From Haplodiscus bocki (taxonomy: Eukaryota), in assembly GCA_965655095.1 (NCBI GenBank), contig CBFHFQ010000351.1, forward strand, positions 1 to 64,000: a stretch of 64,000 nucleotides of DNA, written 5' to 3'. Positions 4,588-28,046 of this stretch are shown piece by piece; position 1 is the first letter of the stretch, and every line of letters starts with the position of its first letter. Below the pieces are notes generated by a model, which was given only the letters and a program-made list of their open reading frames with translations, was not told where the DNA came from and ran no database searches. The position numbers and the translations under genes are program-made.

Positions 4588-5646
4588 TGTCATGACCAAC
4601 TTCTGGGCCAGAGTTTTTCAGTACAGTCAACTGATAATCAAAGTGATAATAAGTATCTGTTTTTTAGTACTTTCATTTCTCCTATTTAAACCTTTTCCTG
4701 ACCGGAAACATAATTGTTTACATTCCAAGTAAAGGTACAAAGTAGGGAAAGGTACTTTAATAATAATAATTACAAAGGAAATATTCCAATTCTGGCGGGG
4801 AATAAACGTCTTTCCCTCCATTTCGTCCTTTACAGATCGCGTCTTTTCCATCTTTCGACGGAAAATATACGGGTCTGATCAGTCGGAAATGGATATGAAA
4901 GTGCTTATTCCCGTGCCGACACAATAAATATTTAACATAAATAAATGATCAAAAAGATTTTCCATAAAGAGACAGTATTGAAAAATGCACCAAAATTAGG
5001 TAAAATACACTGAAATAATCATAGAAATCCATAATTACATGCTTCGAAATATTATTGCATCGATTAAATCCATTTTTGGAACGAAACTAGGCTTTTTCCT
5101 AGTCCGTTCCTCCGTACTACAGGCCGGTTCCTCCTTTTGGCCAAAGCGTTCCGTAAGGACTACGTAGCCGCTTCTAGCACTGGTCTCCGCAGTGCTACTG
5201 AGGAGAATGATTCTGGTGGCTATGTAGACGTTCCGTGTTCGTCCAATTTGACACAGCTTAAAAACACATCGGATTGGTTGAATTTATAGTGACGTCACCA
5301 GATCGGTAGCGACGGAAAGCGTGCGGAACAAATATTCACTCCTAGCCTAGTGTAGCTAATAGGTACGTACGTGTTCGTTCCGTTAATGAGCCGTCCCAAT
5401 CTGGATCAGTACACGGGAGTGCTGCGTAAAAAATAAAAAGAAGTTACATGAATTTTTACTAGGGAGTGATACGTTTTTGATACGTATCAAAAACATGGCA
5501 AGGCGTTGAAATATTGCTGCAATAATATTATATGAATGAAAATGAAAAAGTCTAAAGTTTCAATACAGTTTCTTTTAATTTTCAGGTAATCTGGGGATGT
5601 GCTTTTCTTTCTGTATGCCCGTAGGCTTCGCGGATATACTGCGACA
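4588..5646 (-). repeat. 3' LTR of the family-A element, with an internal deletion removing the LTR ORF
   Basis: TG...CA termini. Homologous to solo LTRs 10636-12497, 16904-18484 and 43000-44643, but ~1.06 kb rather than ~1.6 kb and lacking the MATLRNK ORF. Confidence 0.85.
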
Positions 5647-7950: not shown

Positions 7951-9736
7951 GATTCAAAAATTCAATGTCTTTAATTTTCGTTGCAGTTAGGTTTCAGTTG
8001 GTGACGTAGATTTTATATTGTGCAGCGGGGGTTGTTAGAATCTTGTTCTGATGCTTCTACTTCGTGTACCGTTTGTAGATAAAATGTTGGTAGAAATCCA
8101 CTTTGTCATATATCCCTTCTTTTATGGAGACTTTTTGGGCAAACTTATCGTATTGTGCCTAGTATACTACTAGTCAATTGGGTTGTGTATTTAGATAGTT
8201 CACGAAATCCAGAGGCTGATACACTTTTCACGAACTACGATGGAGGACACTGATATATACAGCTCGTCCATGTCCCATCTCTCACAAGCGTATCCCAAGC
8301 AGCGTTGAAGATGTCTTTCTGAGAAAGGAAAAATTGTCATCTCCATCACATTTCAACTGTGATGCCGTTAGTCGTTCCTTGGGTTTCATTTTGACAGTTC
8401 TGGGAGTTATTGAGGCACAGTACTTGTTTGCTAGTCGTTTCATGTTCTCGGAACTGTTCCGTAGCGGTTCCGGATGTTGAAGTGATGTTTCTTTTAATGA
8501 CGTCGTTTGTGACTCTACAACATTTCTCTGTTTAAGTCGGGGAGTATGCGTGTTTTCATTAATTTCAGCAGTAGAGTCATTCTGAATAATAGCTAACTTG
8601 AACTCTTCACAGATATCTCCAGAGGTTGCTGCCAGACAACACATGGGATTGGTGGAATTTTCTTTTACTGTCTCCGGTGTGTCAGTCACTGTTCCGGAGT
8701 GAAAATGTGGCATTTCTAGTCGAGATGATAGGCTGTAGCCCGAACACAACCAGTTATACTGTCCTGTGCTTCCTGTTGTTGAGGTTTGCTCTTCCAGGGA
8801 AATGGCCTGTTTACTGCATTGGCTGCAACATAACATCTCTCTGCTGAGTGGTTCTTTCTGCCACATGTCTCACAGGGTGGGTAGACAGCTCTAGATTTTC
8901 TGTCAAATTTATATTTGTTGGGGCTAGAGTCATTTGTGTCACTGTTGATATTTCAGGCATTATCTTGGTTGCCTTCAAATTGTCGTTTGTGCGTCAAAGT
9001 GTTCACCTGACGTTCAACAGGAGATCCAAACTGCTTAGCTCTACTTCCTTCTCGATGTTTGTCACAATCTGTTCATACGTGCCGTTCTCCAAGTGGGCCT
9101 AATATGTTGATTTCTTCAGGTTAGCAGGCATCTTGGCATATATGAGTTGTTCAATGACTGCTTGGGCAGCAACTCCAAACGCATATTGTGCCAATTTCTG
9201 GAGTTCGTCCAAAAAATCAATTAACTTCTGGTTGGCTGGATTGAACACTAGTTGTTGAAATTTATGTTTTGCCGTAGTCATTGACTGGGGTTTCACGTAT
9301 TTTCTACGGAATACAGTCAGAATTTCTGTCAGATTCTCTCGGTTCGGGCAGCTGATATTTTTGAACGTCTGCAGCGCAACACCACGCATTAGAGAGTGGA
9401 ATTAGTTTATTTTGTCCTCTTCTGTGAGCTGATTGTGGATTTTTAAACTCGTTTGGAGTACAGCTTCAAACAGTTCAAAGTTCTTTGATTTCCCGTCGAA
9501 GGTGGGCATTGCTGTCGTGAGGGATTTAGACAGTTTTGAAATTTTGTTTACGTTGTTGTTGATGTTGGCGGAGATGATGTTGCTCGCCAACTGCTGAGGG
9601 GCCAATAAAATCTGGTCTGCTTCAATTGTTGCAGAGGTGTTCTCACTGCGAAATGGTGGCTGACTTGTGGAGCGTGTCTTCTTTTGTTTTCCTGACGAAG
9701 TCCCAAGGGAGCAGTAGGGAATGTTTTCTTGAATTT

Positions 9737-9962
9737 CTGTCACCATGTCGTGGCGATTGCGAATCTGTTCTGTAACTCCCGTCACCATGTCGTGACTATT
9801 GCAAATGTCTTCTGTAGCTCCTGTCATCATGTCCTGACGATTGCAAAGTTCTTCTGTAGCTCCTGTCACCATGTCGTGACGATTGCAAATTTCTTCTGTA
9901 TCTCCTGTCACCATGTCGTGAAGATTGCAAATTTCTTCTGTAGCTCCTGTCACCATGTCATG
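9737..9962 (-). repeat. In-frame 42-bp tandem array of the LTR-end/PBS junction (six junction copies; peptide HDMVTGATEEICNR)
   Basis: Plus-strand CACCATG (CATCATG in one unit) at 9741, 9783, 9825, 9867, 9909 and 9951, an exact 42-bp period. Confidence 0.92.
9944..9955 (-). other. Primer-binding site TGGTGACAGGAG (possibly tRNA-Leu type)
   Basis: Begins with TGG directly after the LTR-terminal CA and is complementary to a tRNA 3' end ...CUCCUGUCACCA. The tRNA identity is an inference. Confidence 0.75.
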
Positions 9963-10440
9963 ACCAACTTCTCGGCCACAGTTTTGTGTAATCTGGCTGC
10001 GGAAGATGGCCGCTTCAGGATGAGGATCACTCTGGGAGTCGTCCCCATTTGTGCCCTGGTTTTCCACATTTGTGTTCCGGTATGTTCCCGGAACGGTTCC
10101 GGAGTGCGTCCGTATCTTTGGGTTCAAGAGAAGTTCGTCTGATTTAGACAGAGCACCCAAATGCGAGACTCTGTCCTGCTGAACTCCTGGGACAGTTTTC
10201 AATGACTCTGCCTTCAATCTCCTCAGAAACTTGTGTGATATATTCCTCGTTATTTCTAGGAACCGACGTGTTTCGTGACTGGCCGTTCCTAGGATGTTCT
10301 TCTTGTGTTTCTCTTGTAACGGCTGCCAACTTTCGTTTGTTTCTCAATGTTGCCACTTTTTGAAAGGAAAATGCTACGCAGTTATGAAGACTGAATTAAT
10401 TTCTATTTGTTAATCAAGTTGAGATAATAACAAGAAAAGC
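9956..10440 (-). repeat. Retained 3' part of the 5' LTR of the family-A element
   Basis: Shares its terminus with 4588 and is highly similar to ~43100-43500. Homology stops near 10440, where repeat C begins. Confidence 0.8.
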
Positions 10441-10635
10441 AACTGGACTTTTGGATGTCAAAAAAGACAAAGAATTAACAAACAAGTCAACCTTTCTGTA
10501 TTTCGGTATGAAAATCAAGTGTCATGTTTATCAAGTTTATACAAGTAAATATCAAAAACAGAATAAAAAAGACAAAACGGAAAAGTGGTGAAATCTCCCT
10601 AGTTTGATATAGTCTATGAGAAAACGAATGGACTA
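10441..10635. repeat. Dispersed repeat C, left part (continues at 12498-~12550 after the solo LTR)
   Basis: Aligns with 41461-41655 (ATGTCAAAAAAGACAA.GAATTAACAAACAA ... TTTGATATAGTC.ATGAG.AAACGAATGGA). Confidence 0.8.
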
Positions 10636-11038
10636 TATCACGTTGGTCTTCTTGGCCAGAGTTTCGCATCGTCTGGTTGGCGAAGGTGCCTGCTTCAGGA
10701 TTAGGATCACTGTGGGAGTCGTCCTCATTTGATCCTTGGTTTGTACTAAATGCGTTCTGGGACGTTTCCCGAGCGGTTCCGGAGTGGCACTCGATTAGCG
10801 GGTACATGAGAAAGTTATCTAGACGTGCTAACGCGTCTAATTTGCGATTTTCCGTCATACTGAACTCCTGAGACAACTTCTTTGTGACTCGTCCCTCAAC
10901 TTCTTCAAAAACTTGAGTGATGTAGTCTCCTTGTGATCTAGGAACATTTGACTTTTGTGCCAAGTTGCGCCTAGGATGTTCCTCACAATTTTCTTTATTC
11001 AAAACTGCCAGCTTTCTTTTATTCCTCAGAGTTGCCAT
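10487..11038 (-). CDS. Chimeric ORF: LTR-encoded Gag N-terminus (134 aa) fused to 49 aa from flanking repeat C
   Basis: Open ATG-started 183-aa ORF MATLRNKRKLAVL... that crosses the LTR end at 10636. Expression unknown. Confidence 0.4.
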   Translation of the reverse strand: MATLRNKRKLAVLNKENCEEHPRRNLAQKSNVPRSQGDYITQVFEEVEGRVTKKLSQEFSMTENRKLDALARLDNFLMYPLIECHSGTARETSQNAFSTNQGSNEDDSHSDPNPEAGTFANQTMRNSGQEDQRDIVHSFSHRLYQTREISPLFRFVFFILFLIFTCINLINMTLDFHTEIQKG

Positions 11039-12497
11039 TTTTATGGGAAAAGTAATGATCAGCCGTTAACACTTGTTTCTCTTCTGCTGAAGGAAAATCA
11101 ATTTCGGTATTTTAACAGTTTTGATTAATACAACGAAGGGAAATAACAATACTGGTAATTATCATCAGTACTTCAAAATAATAATAACACTTGTGTTTTT
11201 GTACTTTCATTTCTCCTTTTCATTCCTTCTCCTTGGCGGGAAACATAATTGTTTATACGCCAAGTCAAGATACAAATAGGGAAAATTATTTATATTATTA
11301 AAACATCAAAGTTTGAATACCCTCTCTGGCGGGAAATAAACAACCTTTCCATCCATCGCTTCCCTCATAGGACGCGTCCTTTCCATCTCTCGACAGCAAA
11401 TAGACGGACCTACTCCGTCAGAGATGGATATCAAAGTGTTTATTCCCGCGCCGACATATTGCTTACAAACGAAATAATGTTTATTCCATAATTGGAGCAA
11501 TTGAATGATTCCTTAATTGGGAATCTGACAAGATTTTTAAAATTAAAGTAGCATGTATGGAAAACTAAAAATGATGGTAAATATAAAATATTCATGGTAA
11601 TTCATGCACATATTATCATTTTTCACTCAGTAGTTCTTAAGTCTTTACTCTCTAGAAATGAGGAAAAACTAGTAGCACTATTAGTTTATTCCTCATTCAT
11701 ACGAGTAGCGAATAGTGGTTTTCAGATAATTCCGTAGCCACTAGTAGTAGTATTTGTCTTCAGAAATGAGGAGAAACTAGTAGCAATACTAGTGTACTCC
11801 TCGTTTAGACGAGTAGCTACTAGTGGTTTCCGGATAATTCCGTAGCCACTAGTATTAGTATTTGTCTTCAGAAATGAGGAGAAACTAGTAGAAATACTAG
11901 TTTTACTCCTCGTTTAGACGAGTAGCTACTAGTTGTTTCCGGATGTTTACGTAGCCACTAGTAGTTGAGGCAGGCTGTGCTCAAATGAGGAGTGATTCCG
12001 GAATCAATCCGTATTCACCACAGCACTGCAGCACAGTATAATTATGGGAATGATTGTGACGTCACCACACTAGTAGCGACGGAACGCGTACGGAACAAAC
12101 ATTCACTCTTGGAGTCTTTCACGCTTTACTGCAGTAGCATTATTCTAGTAAAATCACAGCGTCAATTGGATAGCACTTTAGCACAGTAAATCTAATCAAT
12201 TTTACCTGAGTGGTAATTTTATATCGGATGAAATGAATAGACTAGTACAAATGTCGCACCTTCCAGAATGAAAAGCTCTGTGAATATCTGTTTGTTCCCT
12301 AACGGTTCCGTATTAGTCCGGATCAGTTCACTATGGTGATCCGTATAAGATACGGATCAGTAATATCAAAATTAGGAGGAACACGAAGTATGAAGTTTAT
12401 TGTGTTTTATATACAGTTCATCAACTCCCTTGATGGTCTAGGAATGTTCTTTTCTTCTGCAGTTCTTATCCGCAGGCTTCGCATGTATGCTGCGGCA
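10636..12497 (-). mobile_element. Solo LTR, family A, TSD GACTA/GAATA
   Basis: Minus-strand start TGCCGCAGCATAC, end CGTGATA (decayed terminus). TSD matches 4/5. An empty-site homolog is present near 41650. Confidence 0.9.
11654..11965. repeat. 108-bp tandem repeat x~3 inside the solo LTR, each unit with an internal inverted repeat
   Basis: AGAAATGAGG at 11654, 11762 and 11870. Hairpin GAGGAG-AAACTAGTA...TACTAGT-GTA-CTCCTC. Confidence 0.9.
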
Positions 12498-19749: not shown

Positions 19750-21450
19750 GAAATCTGGAATTGAAGAATTTTCTATAGGTGGATCTAGAAAAAGAACGAT
19801 AGCGATTACTACTTAAAGAAAACTGTGAGAAGATCTAGAGTTTCTCCGTTGAATATGAATTTCAATGTGTCTTGAACGTGATGGAGTTTGATTGGAGTTG
19901 AATTCTACATCGCGACAACAAAATCCAGAACGAAAATTTCCAGTTGATTGGCGTGATATTGAAATATATGTAAAACGAGAAGATCGTTATGGAGAAAATC
20001 GATTTCTTGAATTTGAGCGATTACGTGAATGAAAGTTTATAGGATAGGCTGAACGTTGTTCATTTGGATGACTTTGTTTCTGGTAAGTTTTAAAGTATCG
20101 TTTCAAGGATAACAGAAGTAGTTTCGATCGAGAATGACAATTCCGTTTTCTTTGTTCATCTTCGCAATGTTTGCAAAAATAGTTTGAAACAGAGTGATTG
20201 GATTTATGACAATAATTACAGTTATTGCGAAATTGAGGTTTAGTCTAATTATTCGGATCAGTTGTTTAAGTACACATGATTTCAGGTTTTGGATGACAAG
20301 TTTCAGCATATAACTTTTGAGATTCCAGTTTTGATGATACATTATTAATCTCCAGTGGTAGGTCAAGAGTACGAAGTTTTTCTTAAGTAATATTTTCAAT
20401 ATCAACAAGTTTAACCAGTTTATGAATTAGAAGTGAGGGTTCCATAACAGTAGATGTATGTTTAATTTGCCGTTCATGAGCCTAATCTTTCAGTTTTTTG
20501 GGTAGTATTCTGGTGGAAATTTCCTTTTACTTGAGGTTAATAGTTGCAGCAGATTCATTACGCCAGCCCTTTTCAACTAATTGTTGAACTTTCAGAGCAT
20601 AATGACGTACGTTTTCAATTTCTTCTTTCATTAAAACCTGAGCTTCAATTTGGGCGTAAATTGAAGCTTTCTGTGAATAATTTGCTTTTCAAAAGCATAT
20701 ACGAAAGCAGACCAGTCATTTTTGTAAGTTTCATTAAATCGCAAAAACCAGCTTAAAGCGATTGCAGATAAAGAACCTTGTAAAGATTCCATCTTTTCTT
20801 TGGGTCATTGACTATAAGCTAAAAGATCGAGAAGTTCTTTTCTCATAGTAAACATCATGTGCGCATCAACTCGATGTAAATATTCTTCAGAAGTATATAC
20901 ATGGTCAAGTCCATGAACAGTTTTCACAGATTTGTTCATCGAGACAATAGGTACAGTATAGTTCTGTGTGTTTACAGAAGAAAAGTTCATTGGATTGACA
21001 GTGGAAGATGATCAAGATGAAATTGCAGGGAGATTTTTCTGCATGTTAGGTGCAGTATGTGGCTGATATAACGTTCAACATGGGTTTGCAGTGGCGTTTA
21101 ACTTAGTATTTGCTTGAAACGGATTATTGTTGGTACTGCTTAATGACAAAGTTTCAATATTAATCAACTGAGCCAGAGAAGTCATTGACAGAATAGGAAC
21201 AGTTGTAGTTTTTGTTTTTAGGATAAATATTCGATCATTTGATCTCTTCGGTTGTGTTGCTACAGTTTGGTTTTTTTGAATTTGATTAATATAATGAGTA
21301 AATGAAATATACATTGTTATATTCCTTTCGGTTTATTTATATTGAGGAAATGGTAAATTTGCAGTGTTGTGAATGTGAAATTGATAACAAGTTACACCAG
21401 AAAAATTATCTTGAGCTGTAAACTTTTCAGATGTGTTTGGTTCATTATGA
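19750..21450 (-). pseudogene. gag: gag fragment of another Gypsy-like family
   Basis: Capsid-like start (VHGLDHVYTSEEYLHRVDAHMMFTM, 20805-20990), decayed knuckle CNYCHKSNHSVSNY (~20180-20220), Ser/Arg-rich tail. Confidence 0.6.
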
Positions 21451-24400
21451 ATATCAGAATTGCTTCGAGCGATTCTTGTGAGAATTGGTGATTTTGATTC
21501 AAAGAACGTGTAGACAGTTGTCGATTTCAAAAGACCACTTTTTTGTGAAAATCTTCCAACTCTCTTTAGAAATAAAGCTTCAACTTTGCAATGTACCTTT
21601 TTCTCCATTCATTAAATAACCAAACCAATTACCGTTGGCATCACCATACAGTCGATTATGACTTACATTTTCTGCTTTGATGAAGTTAGCTAATGTTTAT
21701 ATTAAATATCGATCAATTGTCCCATTTCTTTCATCATTACTGAAACCATTACATAGACGGTTGAATCCTTAATTTCCTCAAATTCTTTTGTTGCTGATTG
21801 GCTTTCTTCAGGTAGCTTTTGATTTTTGTCGTCCAAAGCTTTAGTGGTTGACTCAAAATTTTTTTGTGAATCATAATAATAATTCTATTTACCCAATTTT
21901 TCTTGTAAACTTTCATCATTTACTTGCGATTGTACTTCTTCTAAGTTTCTTACCGTCTTCTAGAGTATCTTTGCTTTTGATTGAACATAACATCTTAATT
22001 TTATTCGTAAACAGGTTTTGTTTCTCGAAAACGCTTTCTAATTGTGTAACATTTCAAGGGATAATTATAATTATAACTAAACAGACAATTTCCTCCTTTT
22101 TATCTAAAGAGGTAACTTTGCTATTGTTTTTAGTGAAAGTTTGTCTCAGGTGTACATTCAGTGATAGTATTTTTGTTTTCGTTGCAAATACAGTGTTTAC
22201 CTTCACTTTTCTTTTTAGATTACGTCAAACTAAAGGTATTTCGCTTCTTCGTTTTTCCATTTTTCACTGCAAAAGTCCTTACATTCATCGTAATTTTAAA
22301 CTAACCCAGCAAAAACTCTGCAGATGTTTTCTACGTCTTTTAAAGTTTGCTTAAAGAAAATAAATATATTGCTGTTGTTTCTTTTTGTTGTTTTTGATAG
22401 TTTGAATTTTGATTAGAAAAAAATTATCACACTTTTAAATCCTTATGTCTCTATATTGTATGAAATTGATAAATTGTTTTTTGGTTTTTTTCTAACATAT
22501 CCTCAAAAAAATTAACACCACCTTCATTTTCACCTATTTTTTGATTTTGATCTTCAATTTTATAATATGTGCGATACTGCTCAGGAGGTTTTCGTACAAA
22601 AAAACTTCTCTATCAACGACTTTATCTAATTTTTTCTTTATCAGATAAGTTTTATCTGAAAATGATGGCCCTACACTTTAGGTTTGATTCTCTCTAACAC
22701 ATTTCTATTTGTAGTTGCCAGATTGAACCACATTTTCACATTTCTGTTTTGGTAACCGTTTTTGACTGAATGACTTTTCACAAAAGTGGCATTTGTTTTT
22801 TTTCTCGGAACAAACACTTTTTCTTACTATAGAACTTACCAGATTCTAATTTTCTTTTACACCTTTTACAAAAAAAGATAATCATACAAATGGAAATAGA
22901 AAAATGTTTATTTTGCTGATATATTCTCGGAAACTTCTCGAAGCCCTTCTTGGAAAAATTTCTCGGAAATCAACTTCTATTTGTATAAAATTTGAGTTCC
23001 TTTTGGTTGTTCGTTAACAAAATTTATGTTTAGTACTTTACAATCGGTGTAGCCGACTTTTCTCAAAAGAATCAATCTAATTCTCGGAAATGTTTTTAGT
23101 AGAAACGTTAAATAACGATTCATATTCTATTTTGTCAAATGCATTGTCTTGTAGGCATTTCCTATAAAGTAAAAAGAATTAGTCGTCTGTTGTGCTTTTT
23201 CATAATGCTTTTTGTATTTATTCAATTTTTTTTTAAAAATCAACTCAAGAATTACTTTTTCAGTTGAAGTTAAAGCACAAGCATCACCAGAGGAAATTGG
23301 TATCACAATTAGTAGAAGACCAGTGTTCGAGACAATAGGTACAGTATAGTTCTGTATGTTTACAGAAGAAACGTTCATTGGATTGACAGTGGAAGATGAT
23401 CAAGATGAAATTGCAGGGAGATTTTTCTGCATGTTAGGTGCAGTATGTGGCTGATATAACGTTCAACATGGGTTTGCAGTGGCGTTTAACTTAGTAATTG
23501 CTTGAAACGGATTATTGTTGGTACTGCTTAATGACAAAGTTTCAGTAATAATCAACGGAGCCAGAGAAGACATTGACAGAATAGGAGCAGTTGTAGTTTT
23601 TGTATTTAGGATAAATATTCGATCATTTGACCTCTTCGGTTGTGTTGCTACAGTTTGGTTTATTTGAATTTGATTAATATAATGAGTAAATGAAATATAC
23701 ATTGTTATATTCCTTTCGGTTTATTTATATTGAGGAAATGGTAAATTTGCAGTGTTGTGAATGTGAAATTGATAACAAGTTACACCAGAAAAATTATCTT
23801 GAGCTGTAAACTTTTCAGATGTGTTTGCTTCATTATGAATATCAGAATTGCTTCGAGCGATTCTTGTGAGAATTGGTGATTTTGATTCAAAGAACGTGTA
23901 GACAGTTGTAGATTTCAAAAGACCACCTTTTTTGTGAAAATCTTCCAACTCTTTTTAGAAATAAAGCTTCTACTCTGCAATGTACCTTTTTCTCCATTAA
24001 TTAAAAAACCAAACCAATTACCGTTGGCATCATCATACAGTCGATTATGACTTACATTTTCTGCTTTGATGAAGTTAGCTAATGTTAATATTAAATATCG
24101 ATCAATTGTCCCATTTCTTTCATCATTACGGAAACCATTACATAGACATTTGAATCCTTAATTTCCTCAAATTCTTTTGTTGCTGATTGGCTTTCTTCAG
24201 GTAGCTTTTGATTTTTGTCGTCCAAAGCTTTAGTGGTTGACTCAAAATTTTTTTGTGAATCATAATAATAATTCTATTTACCCAATTTTTCTTGTAAACT
24301 TTTATCATTTACTTGCGATTGTACTTCTTCTAAGTTTCTTACCGTCTTCTAGAGTATCTTTGCTTTTGATTGAACATAACATCTTAATTTTATTCGTAAA

Positions 24401-27400
24401 CAGGTTTTGTTTCTCGAAAACGCTTTCTAATTGTGTAACATTTCAAGGGATAATTATAATTATAACTAAACAGACAATTTCCTCCTTTTTATCTAAAAAG
24501 GTAACTTTGCTATTGTTTTTAGTGAAAGTTTGTTTCAGGTGTACATTCAGTGATAGTATTTTTGTTTTCGTTGCAAATACAGTGTTTACGTTCACTTTTC
24601 TTTTAGATTACGTCAAACTAAAGGTATTTCGCTTCTTCGTTTTTCCATTTTTCACTGCAAAAGTCCTTACATTCATCGTAATTTTAAACTAACCCAGCAA
24701 AAACTCTGCAGATGTTTTCTACGTCTTTTAAAGTTTGCTTAAAGAAAATAAATATATTGCTGTTGTTTCTTTTTGTTGTTTTTGATAGTTTGAATTTTGA
24801 TTAGAAAAAAATTATCACACTTTTAAATCCTTATGTCTCTATATTGTATGAAATGGATAAATTGTTTTTTGGTTTTTTTCTAACATATCCTCAAAAAATT
24901 TAACACCACCTTCATTTTCACCTATTTCTTGATTTTGATCTTCAATTTTATAATATGTGCGATACTGCTCAGGAGGGTTTGTACAAAAAAACTTCTCTAT
25001 CAACGACTTTATCTAATTTTTTCTTTATCAGATAAGTTTTATCTGAAAATGATGGCCCTACAATTTAGGTTTGATTCTTTCTAACACATTTCTACTTGTA
25101 GTTGCCAGATTGAACCACATTTTCATATTTCTGTTTTGGTAACCGTTTTTGACTGAATGACTTTTCACAAAAGTGGCATTTGTTTTTTTTCTCGGAACAA
25201 ACACTTTTTCTTACTATAGAACTTACCAGATTCTAATTTTCTTTTACACCTTTTACAGAAAAAGATAATCATACATATGGAAATAGAAAAATGTTTACTT
25301 TGCTGATATATTCTCGGAAACTTCACGAAACCCTTCTTGGAAAAATTTCTCGGAAATCAACTTCTATTTGTATAAAATTGGAGTTCCTTTTGGTTGTTCG
25401 TTAACAAAATTTATGTTTAGTACTTTACAATCGGTGTAGCCGACTTTTCTCAAAAGAATCAATCTAATTCTCGGAAATGTTTTTAGTAGAAACGTTAAAT
25501 AACGCCTCATATTCTATTTTGTCAAATGCATTGTCTTGTAGGCATTTCCTATAAAGTAAAAAGAATTAGTCGTCTGTTGTGCTTTTTCATAATGCTTTTT
25601 GTATTTATTCAATTTTTTTTAAAAAATCAACTCAAGAATTACTTATTCAGTTGAAGTTAAAGCACAAGCATCACCAGAGGAAATTGGTATCACAATTAGT
25701 ACAAGACCAGTGTTCGAGACAATAGGTACAGTATAGTTCTGTATGTATACAGAAGAGAAGTTCATTGGATTGACAGTGGAAGATGATCAAGATGAAATTG
25801 CAGGGAGATTTTGCTGCATGTTAGGTGCAGTATGTGGCTGATATAACGTTCAACATGGGTTTGCAGTGGCGTTTAACTTAGTATTTGCTTGAAACGGATT
25901 ATTGTTGGTACTGCTTAATGACAAAGTTTCAGTAATAATCAACGGAGCCAGAGAAGACATTGACAGAATAGGAACAGTTGTAGTTTTTGTATTTAGGATA
26001 AATATTCGATCATTTGATCTCTTCGGTTGTGTTGCTACAGTTTGGTTTTTTTGAATTTGATTAATATAATGAGTAAATGAAATATACATTGTTATATTCC
26101 TTTCGGTTTATTTATATTGAGGAAATGGTAAATTTGCAGTGTTGTGAATGTGAAATTGATAACAAGTTACACCAGAAAAATTATCTTGAGCTGTAAACTT
26201 TTCAGATGTGTTTGGTTCATTATGAATATCAGAATTGCTTCGAGCGATTCTTGTGAGAATTGGTGATTTTGATTCAAAGAACGTGTAGACAGTTGTAGAT
26301 TTCAAAAGACCACTTTTTTTGTGAAAATCTTCCAACTCTTCTTAGAAATAAAGCTTCTACTCTGCAATGTACCTTTTTCTCCATTCATTAAAAAACCAAA
26401 CCAATTACCGTTGGAATCATCATACAGTCGATTATGACTTACATTTTCTGATTTGATGAAGTTAGCTAATGTTTATATTAAATATCGATCAATTGTCCCA
26501 TTTCTTTCATCATTACTGAAACCATTACATAGACATTTGAATCCTAAATTTCCTCAACTTCTTTTGTTGCTGATTGGCTTTCTTCAGGTAGCTTTTGATT
26601 TTTGTCTTCCAAAGCTTTAGTGGTTGACTCAAAAAATTCTGTGAATCATAAATATAATCCTATTTACCCAATTTTTCTTGTAAACTTTTATCATTTACTT
26701 GCGATTGTACTTCTTCTAAGTTTCTTACCGTCTTCTAGAGTATCTTTGCTTTTGATTGAACATAACATCTTAATTTTATTCGTAAACAGGTTTTGTTTCT
26801 CGAAAACGCTTTCTAATTGTGTAACATTTCAAGGGATAATTATAATTATAACTAAACAGACAATTTCCTCCTTTTTATCTAAAAATGTAACTTTGCTATT
26901 GTTTTTAGTGAAAGTTTGTTTCAGGTGTACATTCAGTGATAGTATTTTTGTTTTCGTTGCAAATACAGTGTTTACGTTCATTTTTTTTAGATTACGTCAA
27001 ACTAAAGTATTTGGCTTCTTCGTTTTTCCATTCTTCGCTGCAAAAGTCCTTACATTCATCGTAATTTTAAACTAACCCAGCAAAAACTCTGCAGATGTTT
27101 TCTACGTCTTTTAAAGTTTGCTTAAAGAAAATAAATATATTGCTGTTGTTTCTTTTTGTTGTTTTTGATAGTTTGAATTTTGATTAGAAAAAAATTATCA
27201 CACTTTTAAATCCTTATGTCTCTATATTGTATGAAATGGATAAATTGTTTTTTGGTTTTTTTCTAACATATCCTCAAAAAATTTAACACGACCTTCATTT
27301 TCACCTATTTCTTGATTTTGATCTTCAATTTTATAATATGTGCGATACTGCTCAGGAGGTTTTCGTACAAAAAAACTTCTCTATCAACGACTTTATCTAA

Positions 27401-28046
27401 TTTTTTCTTTATCAGATAAGTTTTATCTGAAAATGATGGCCCTACACTTTAGGTTTGATTCCGATTTAGGTTTTGGTAACCGTTTTTGACTGAATGACTT
27501 TTCACAAAAGTGGCATTTGTTTTTTTTCTCGGAACAAACACTTTTTCTTACTATAGAACTTACCAGATTCTAATTTTCTTTTACACCTTTTACAGAAAAA
27601 GATAATCATACATATGGAAATAGAAAAATGTTTACTTTGCTGATATATTCTCGGAAACTTCACGAAACCCTTCTTGGAAAAATTTCTCGGAAATCAACTT
27701 CTATTTGTATAAAATTGGAGTTCCTTTTGGTTGTTCGTTAACAAAATTTATGTTTAGTACTTTACAATCGGTGTAGCCGACTTTTCTCAAAAGAATCAAT
27801 CTAATTCTCGGAAATGTTTTTAGTAGAAACGTTAAATAACGCCTCATATTCTATTTTGTCAAATGCATTGTCTTGTAGGCATTTCCTATAAAGTAAAAAG
27901 AATTAGTCGTCTGTTGTGCTTTTTCATAATGCTTTTTGTATTTATTCAATTTTTTTAAAAATCAACTCAAGAATTACTTATTCAGTTGAAGTTAAAGCAC
28001 AAGCATCACCAGACGAAATTGGTATCACAATCAGTACAAGACCAGT
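20939..28046. repeat. Tandem triplication of a ~2.39-kb unit
   Basis: Units start with TCGAGACAATAGG at 20939, 23327 and 25714. The units are near-identical; unit 3 is ~50 bp shorter (deletion near 27460). Confidence 0.95.

Follow-up and report, generated by a model that had tools for sequence, protein, structure and literature searches.

A tandem array of LTR-end/primer-binding-site junctions inside the gag gene of an abundant retrotransposon family

Introduction

An LTR retrotransposon is expected to carry a single primer-binding site (PBS), and genomes with several such sites are known mainly from engineered vectors. The locus examined here raises the question of what a retrotransposon does with more than one. 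In a 64,000-nt stretch of contig CBFHFQ010000351.1 (assembly GCA_965655095.1; hereafter the window), the first-pass annotation described six in-frame copies of the junction between an LTR end and a PBS inside gag, and proposed either that these were redundant or decoy priming sites, or that the array arose by repeated slippage during reverse transcription and survived because it is frame-neutral. We therefore asked whether the array is real, whether it belongs to the family or only to this copy, whether a host tRNA fits the PBS, and whether the inner sites have left any trace of use. The description was confirmed, and the reading as redundant priming sites was supported.

The array and its element in the window

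Tandem Repeats Finder reported a 42-nt period with 5.4 copies, 88% matches and no indels at 9737-9964. On the minus strand, six junction motifs ACATGGTGACAGGAG, each containing the last bases of the LTR followed by a 12-nt PBS (ACA|TGGTGACAGGAG), lie exactly 42 nt apart. Three are exact (plus-strand coordinates 9944-9958, 9902-9916 and 9860-9874), two carry one change (9818-9832, TGATGACAGGAG; 9776-9790, TGGTGACGGGAG) and one carries two changes (9734-9748, TGGTGACAGAAA). PBS 1 (9944-9955) abuts the LTR end, and PBS 2 (9902-9913) and PBS 3 (9860-9871) are also exact, so that the positions 9951, 9909 and 9867 given by the first-pass annotation for the exact copies fall inside these three sites; PBS 4 to 6 lie at 9818-9829, 9776-9787 and 9734-9745. 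The exact 12-mer occurs nowhere else in the window. The array is in frame within ORF 9402-10217(-), which passes through the LTR end and the whole array and reads ...HDMVTGATEEICN... six times (14-aa repeats HDMVTGxTEEIxNx). The opposite strand is also open at 9729-10142(+) (137 aa, with repeats ...CHHVVTIANFFC...), which is probably a by-product of a stop-free repeat. At every junction the last A of the LTR and the TG of the PBS form an in-frame ATG (for example at 9953-9958(-)), so the array offers up to six internal start codons, and one database protein (P0175) starts at such an MVTG. In addition, the LTR terminus GTGACA recurs inside the PBS (TG-GTGACA-GG).

The window copy is an old, broken member of its family. 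Only the last ~480 bp of its 5' LTR remain (9956-10436, minus strand), the first ~1040 bp being missing, and this LTR ends ...GGTCATGACA at 9956. The start of gag (MATLRNKRKL...) lies inside the LTR at 10144-10356(-), but in this copy the start codon reads GTG and the frame is lost before the array. A piece of the gag capsid domain at 9099-9389(-) gave a weak Pfam Retrotrans_gag match (E 0.0015). The 3' LTR at 4588-5646(-) lacks LTR positions ~1017-1496 but keeps the canonical end ...GGTCATGACA at 4588, which is followed by unrelated flank. A related LTR directly upstream, at 10487-11038(-), is not part of this element; it has its own MATLRNKRKL frame, its LTR ends ...CGTGATA at 10648, and the frame then runs on into flank to give a 183-aa ORF, an example of a solo or 3' LTR acting as an ORF starter. 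The window also contains a 108-bp tandem unit (86-90% identity) at 11649-11963 inside older LTR-like DNA and, unrelated to the array, a unit of about 2.39 kb repeated three times in tandem at 95-99% identity at 20939-27758.

The LTR boundary and the nature of the family

The genome was searched with 751 nt around the array. This gave 5850 candidates, and all 40 that were scored matched over essentially the full length at 81-85% identity. Around eight of them, 18 kb was taken, and each contained a pair of direct repeats of about 1.39-1.69 kb (mostly ~1.53 kb) with 96-99.5% identity. In six the repeat stopped at ...GTGACA|TGGTGACAGGAG; one (copy c4) ran six bases further, which fits a chance match with its target duplication, and one (copy c3) was cut off by an assembly gap. 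The LTRs run TGTCGC...GTGACA, the polypurine tract aaagagggggag abuts the 3' LTR in seven copies, and 5-bp target-site duplications (TSDs) were found (ACACT, GCAAC, GTAAC and CTGAT). Copies elsewhere align to window positions 10436-9956 with the last 485 nt of their LTR (positions ~1042-1526). The boundary at 9956 given by the first-pass annotation is therefore right.

In copies with an open frame, gag starts about 400 nt inside the LTR, runs through the LTR end and the array, and ends after a CX2CX4HX4C knuckle, giving 505-567 aa. An uninterrupted relative matched Pfam DUF1759 at 31.2 bits against a cut-off of 25.4, and Retrotrans_gag weakly. No reverse transcriptase, RNase H or integrase domain was found in the remaining ~4 kb of internal sequence of a full copy (locus L031), although short ORFs there (L031:8238-8516 and neighbouring ORFs) showed weak immunoglobulin-domain similarity (E about 0.01-0.03) and may be captured host sequence. 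Thus, as a correction of context to the first-pass annotation, this family has gag but no pol, which implies mobilisation in trans. A gag relative at 42% identity lies next to a 1701-aa product with RVT_1, RT_RNaseH, Integrase_H2C2 and rve, and no Pao peptidase was seen among the relatives examined. The family is therefore probably a gag-only derivative of a Ty3/gypsy-type clade and not an autonomous member.

The primer tRNA

The pattern GTTCRANNCNNNCTCCTGTCA had 893 matches in the genome and none in the reversed control, so that about 890 loci end ...CTCCTGTCA, many of them in large tandem clusters. At C1:161.07-161.14 Mb of the genome (G000), hundreds of 3' ends lie at ~424-bp spacing, and some have an extra ~18 nt (possible intron); at C11:13.12-13.38 Mb, 82-nt genes lie 0.5-1 kb apart. 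A second pattern requiring the TGGCCGAG D-arm of leucine tRNAs returned 78 genes, most of them 82 nt long, with a long variable arm and CAG, AAG or TAG anticodon loops. These genes were identified as tRNA-Leu by reading their sequences and not with a tRNA finder, and position 2 is not A. The window itself has no tRNA gene. With CCA added to genes ending ...CACTCCTGTCA, as would be expected in a eukaryote, the 3' end ...CUCCUGUCACCA is the exact 12-nt complement of TGGTGACAGGAG. The next tRNA base would pair with T, which 47% of units have, and complementarity ends after that. A search for PBS copies matching the tRNA beyond 13 nt found none in the loci searched. However, a single 39-nt unit elsewhere (G000 C3260:6568-6612) matches the tRNA over 17 nt (TGGTGACAGGAGTGGGA) and may be a trace of copying further into the tRNA primer.

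Copy number and conservation of the units

The array is family-wide and is not a slip in this dead copy. Six junctions were present in each of 30 sampled copies, but this sample was biased towards six units by the query used, and copy number was therefore taken from protein lengths. More than 3000 gag proteins were found, with lengths stepping by 14 aa. Among 54 of the best 120 that could be parsed and lay on the 14-aa period, the junction counts were 3 (8 proteins), 4 (14), 5 (13), 6 (12), 7 (4), 8 (2) and 10 (1). The ten-unit copy has seven near-identical units, which points to a recent expansion, and a canonical 3' LTR end. Of the six odd unit lengths seen among the 30 copies, four are multiples of 3 (30, 39 and 51 twice) and the other two are 40 and 47, which is consistent with slippage kept because it is frame-neutral.

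The units are not conserved evenly. Over 180 units, positions -3 to +9 (ACA|TGGTGACAG) are 95-99% identical and +10 to +12 are 73-92% identical, while many spacer positions fall to 38-60%. The capsid part of gag shows the usual codon signature, with diversity 0.07/0.06/0.14 at codon positions 1/2/3, but the array does not (0.18/0.19/0.17). A direct test of nucleotide-level against protein-level constraint at four-fold sites was only suggestive: mean diversity was 0.072 in the core, 0.175 in array spacers (p = 0.026) and 0.123 in the rest of gag (p = 0.11).

These data bear on the possibility that the repeat is kept for the protein, with a D-M-V-T-G peptide acting in Gag assembly or as a cleavage or docking motif and the likeness to a PBS being secondary. 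The array is always in frame in open copies, in-frame length variants occur, and the core is conserved at all codon positions. However, gag relatives at 42-48% identity have a single MVTG, preceded by D, H or N, in otherwise unrelated sequence, and one relative that was checked at the DNA level (locus L049) has a single ...ACA|TGGTGACAGGAG. These facts indicate that MVTG is the primer site translated (GAC A|TG GTG ACA GGA = D-M-V-T-G) and not a protein motif. Furthermore, copy number is unconstrained (3-10) and the surrounding repeat residues change mostly at first and second codon positions. A Gag structure model from 23 sequences gave no confident fold for the region (mean pLDDT 32) and cannot say whether it is disordered. 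A protein role was thus considered improbable. One pol-bearing relative (L050:8563-8690) has four junction-like copies at irregular spacing (30, 42 and 33 nt), the last being the best PBS, so arrays may have arisen more than once in the clade.

The array also has a clear polarity. The share of exact 12-nt PBS falls with unit index from the LTR (0.86, 0.66, 0.76, 0.41, 0.28 and 0.00). The seven bases before the terminal ACA of the true LTR end match the ends of units 1-3 of the same copy (0.85, 0.80 and 0.77) better than those of other copies (about 0.66), with a permutation p of about 2e-4, although the copies are related. Spacers of units 1-3 resemble each other within a copy (0.79-0.82) more than their counterparts in other copies (0.70-0.74), whereas unit 5 does the opposite (0.64 against 0.81). 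Turnover is therefore concentrated next to the LTR, and distal units are old and decayed.

Extended right ends and use of the inner sites

In the standard scheme of reverse transcription, the right end of the DNA copy should be the base just upstream of the PBS on which the tRNA sits. Priming at PBS k should therefore give a right LTR extended by k-1 whole units, an extension that would not be inherited because U5 of the 3' LTR is not transcribed. The genome was searched for a junction, then 28 nt, then TGACA followed by three bases that are not T, not G and not G. This gave 13 hits, 12 of them with family-type spacers and varied following bases, against 1472 normal unit pairs, and the same search with the break placed 3 nt later gave 0 hits.

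Four insertions flanked by perfect 5-bp TSDs have a right LTR longer by exactly 42 nt (three cases) or 84 nt (one case). One genome hit (C8:26922477) lies 6679 bp downstream of copy L025, in a tandem LTR-internal-LTR-internal-LTR structure (L025/L026, G000 C8:26.907-26.923 Mb) with a 6679-bp period, whose two repeats differ at 2 of ~3400 positions and whose last LTR carries one extra unit. The 5 bp before the leftmost LTR are AAACC, and a search for the unit end followed by AAACC found exactly that place (C8:26922521). The other three were recognised because several short products in a representative-protein search consist of the LTR-encoded gag start plus one or two units and then unrelated residues. 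Locus L052 is a complete element with an LTR pair 98.97% identical, a 3' LTR 42 nt longer and ATAGC on both sides; L053 is a solo LTR plus one unit, flanked by GCAAG; and L051 is an element whose 3' LTR carries two extra units, flanked by GCGAC. These three come from a public assembly whose species could not be named, so that the four events represent two assemblies. Contigs of four public sequencing runs gave only short fragments of a high-copy repeat and nothing on the array.

The inner sites are nevertheless a minority route; all eight other readable 3' ends are canonical. In one subfamily, 163 LTR ends are followed by TGG and 267 by non-PBS bases, and there are about 2.07 exact pairs per array, which suggests that about 2% of right ends are extended. 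The protein list, which favours long matches, suggests up to about 15%, and the estimate is rough. One copy (c2b) remains unexplained, as its 3' LTR runs 157 nt into the array, stops 11 nt short of a junction, has no TSD and is followed by unrelated DNA; internal priming does not explain it.

It is possible in principle that the extended ends arose after insertion by gene conversion, unequal crossing-over or assembly error. The C8 case sits in a tandem structure on which recombination has acted, and such repeats are hard to assemble. However, conversion cannot add a unit beyond the LTR without homology on the far side, the ends fall exactly after ...ACA and never 3 nt later, and the TSD follows the extended end directly in four independent loci. 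This alternative was regarded as very unlikely. Another alternative is a passive coding minisatellite, in which a slip once duplicated the junction, the copies persist only because 42 nt keeps gag in frame in a tolerant region, and the inner sites do nothing. The array does fit the description of a coding minisatellite, as copy number varies freely from 3 to 10 among open frames. The spacer codons show no purifying signature, and distal PBS copies decay. However, insertions ending exactly at an inner unit boundary and the conserved core contradict the passive reading for units 2 and 3; it could still hold for distal units, but as a whole it is unlikely.

[quoted passage not shown] Each unit is a complete right-end module, namely an LTR-like terminus (...GTGACA) followed by 9-12 nt complementary to the 3' end of host tRNA-Leu. 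Reverse transcription normally starts at the first PBS, and in a minority of cycles (roughly 2-15% of right ends) at the second or third, so that the DNA copy ends at the ...ACA of that unit and is integrated normally with a 5-bp TSD. That the extended ends come from internal priming is inferred from the rule that the primer position sets the right end, and it is likewise inferred that integrase accepts the unit terminus because it mimics the LTR end. The birth of units next to the LTR by reverse-transcription events is also inference. One route that fits the polarity is that reverse transcription initiates at PBS 2, the minus strand is completed on a template that still reaches PBS 1, and the plus strand is then transferred onto PBS 1, which duplicates the proximal unit; the reverse misalignment deletes units.

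It has been reported that 3'-tRNA fragments repress active mouse LTR retrotransposons through PBS complementarity (PMC12853362), and the host has very many tRNA-Leu genes, so the array might be a decoy that soaks up such fragments or spares the functional site. This idea remains open without small-RNA data but seems unlikely; more target sites on the same RNA would, if anything, attract more silencing, and the match of 12-13 nt is shorter than the 18-22 nt fragments described in mouse. A more far-reaching and only tentative possibility is that the array is a self-renewing, selected priming platform, whose redundancy protects a trans-mobilised, gag-only element against loss of its primer site by mutation or by host tRNA-fragment targeting. 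Because each use of an inner site would leave a countable scar (LTR + n units), primer-site choice could then be read straight from genomes.

Comparison with known systems

The family has thousands of copies in a 1.5-Gb genome and offers a natural experiment on how reverse transcriptase chooses among primer sites, how much of the LTR terminus integrase needs, and how reverse transcription itself can build and renew tandem repeats. LTR annotation tools that assume one PBS and identical LTR lengths will misplace the boundaries of these copies, and every solo LTR of the clade also carries a gag start that can read into host DNA. No natural tandem PBS array was found in the literature searched, which is not proof that none has been described, but several related arrangements are known.

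In yeast Ty1 (Ty1/copia), gag (TYA) appears likewise to open inside the 5' LTR, with the tRNA-iMet PBS in coding sequence, so that the PBS is under both coding and priming constraints; Ty1, however, probably has one PBS and no tandem copies, belongs to a different superfamily and uses a different primer tRNA. In engineered retroviral vectors with two primer-binding sites (Voronin and Pathak, J Virol 2004), reverse transcription can seemingly start at either site, and a start at the downstream site would make the right LTR carry the intervening sequence, as do the +42 and +84 nt ends found here. Those vectors are artificial, with two sites and no coding role, whereas the present array is natural, has 3-10 sites and is in frame in gag, and each site also brings its own LTR-like terminus, so the product has a normal-looking end. 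Non-autonomous elements that keep gag but lack pol, of which barley BARE2 is a likely example, probably share the open gag frame, the absence of reverse transcriptase and integrase, young LTR pairs and high copy number, but no PBS array seems to be known for them. Finally, tandem repeats just downstream of the 5' LTR occur in gypsy-like elements, for example Mag-lineage elements of Culex that use tRNA-Leu or tRNA-Ser (PMC3286476); those repeats are described as 5' UTR repeats and not as copies of the LTR-end/PBS junction, and they are not reported as coding or as alternative primer sites.
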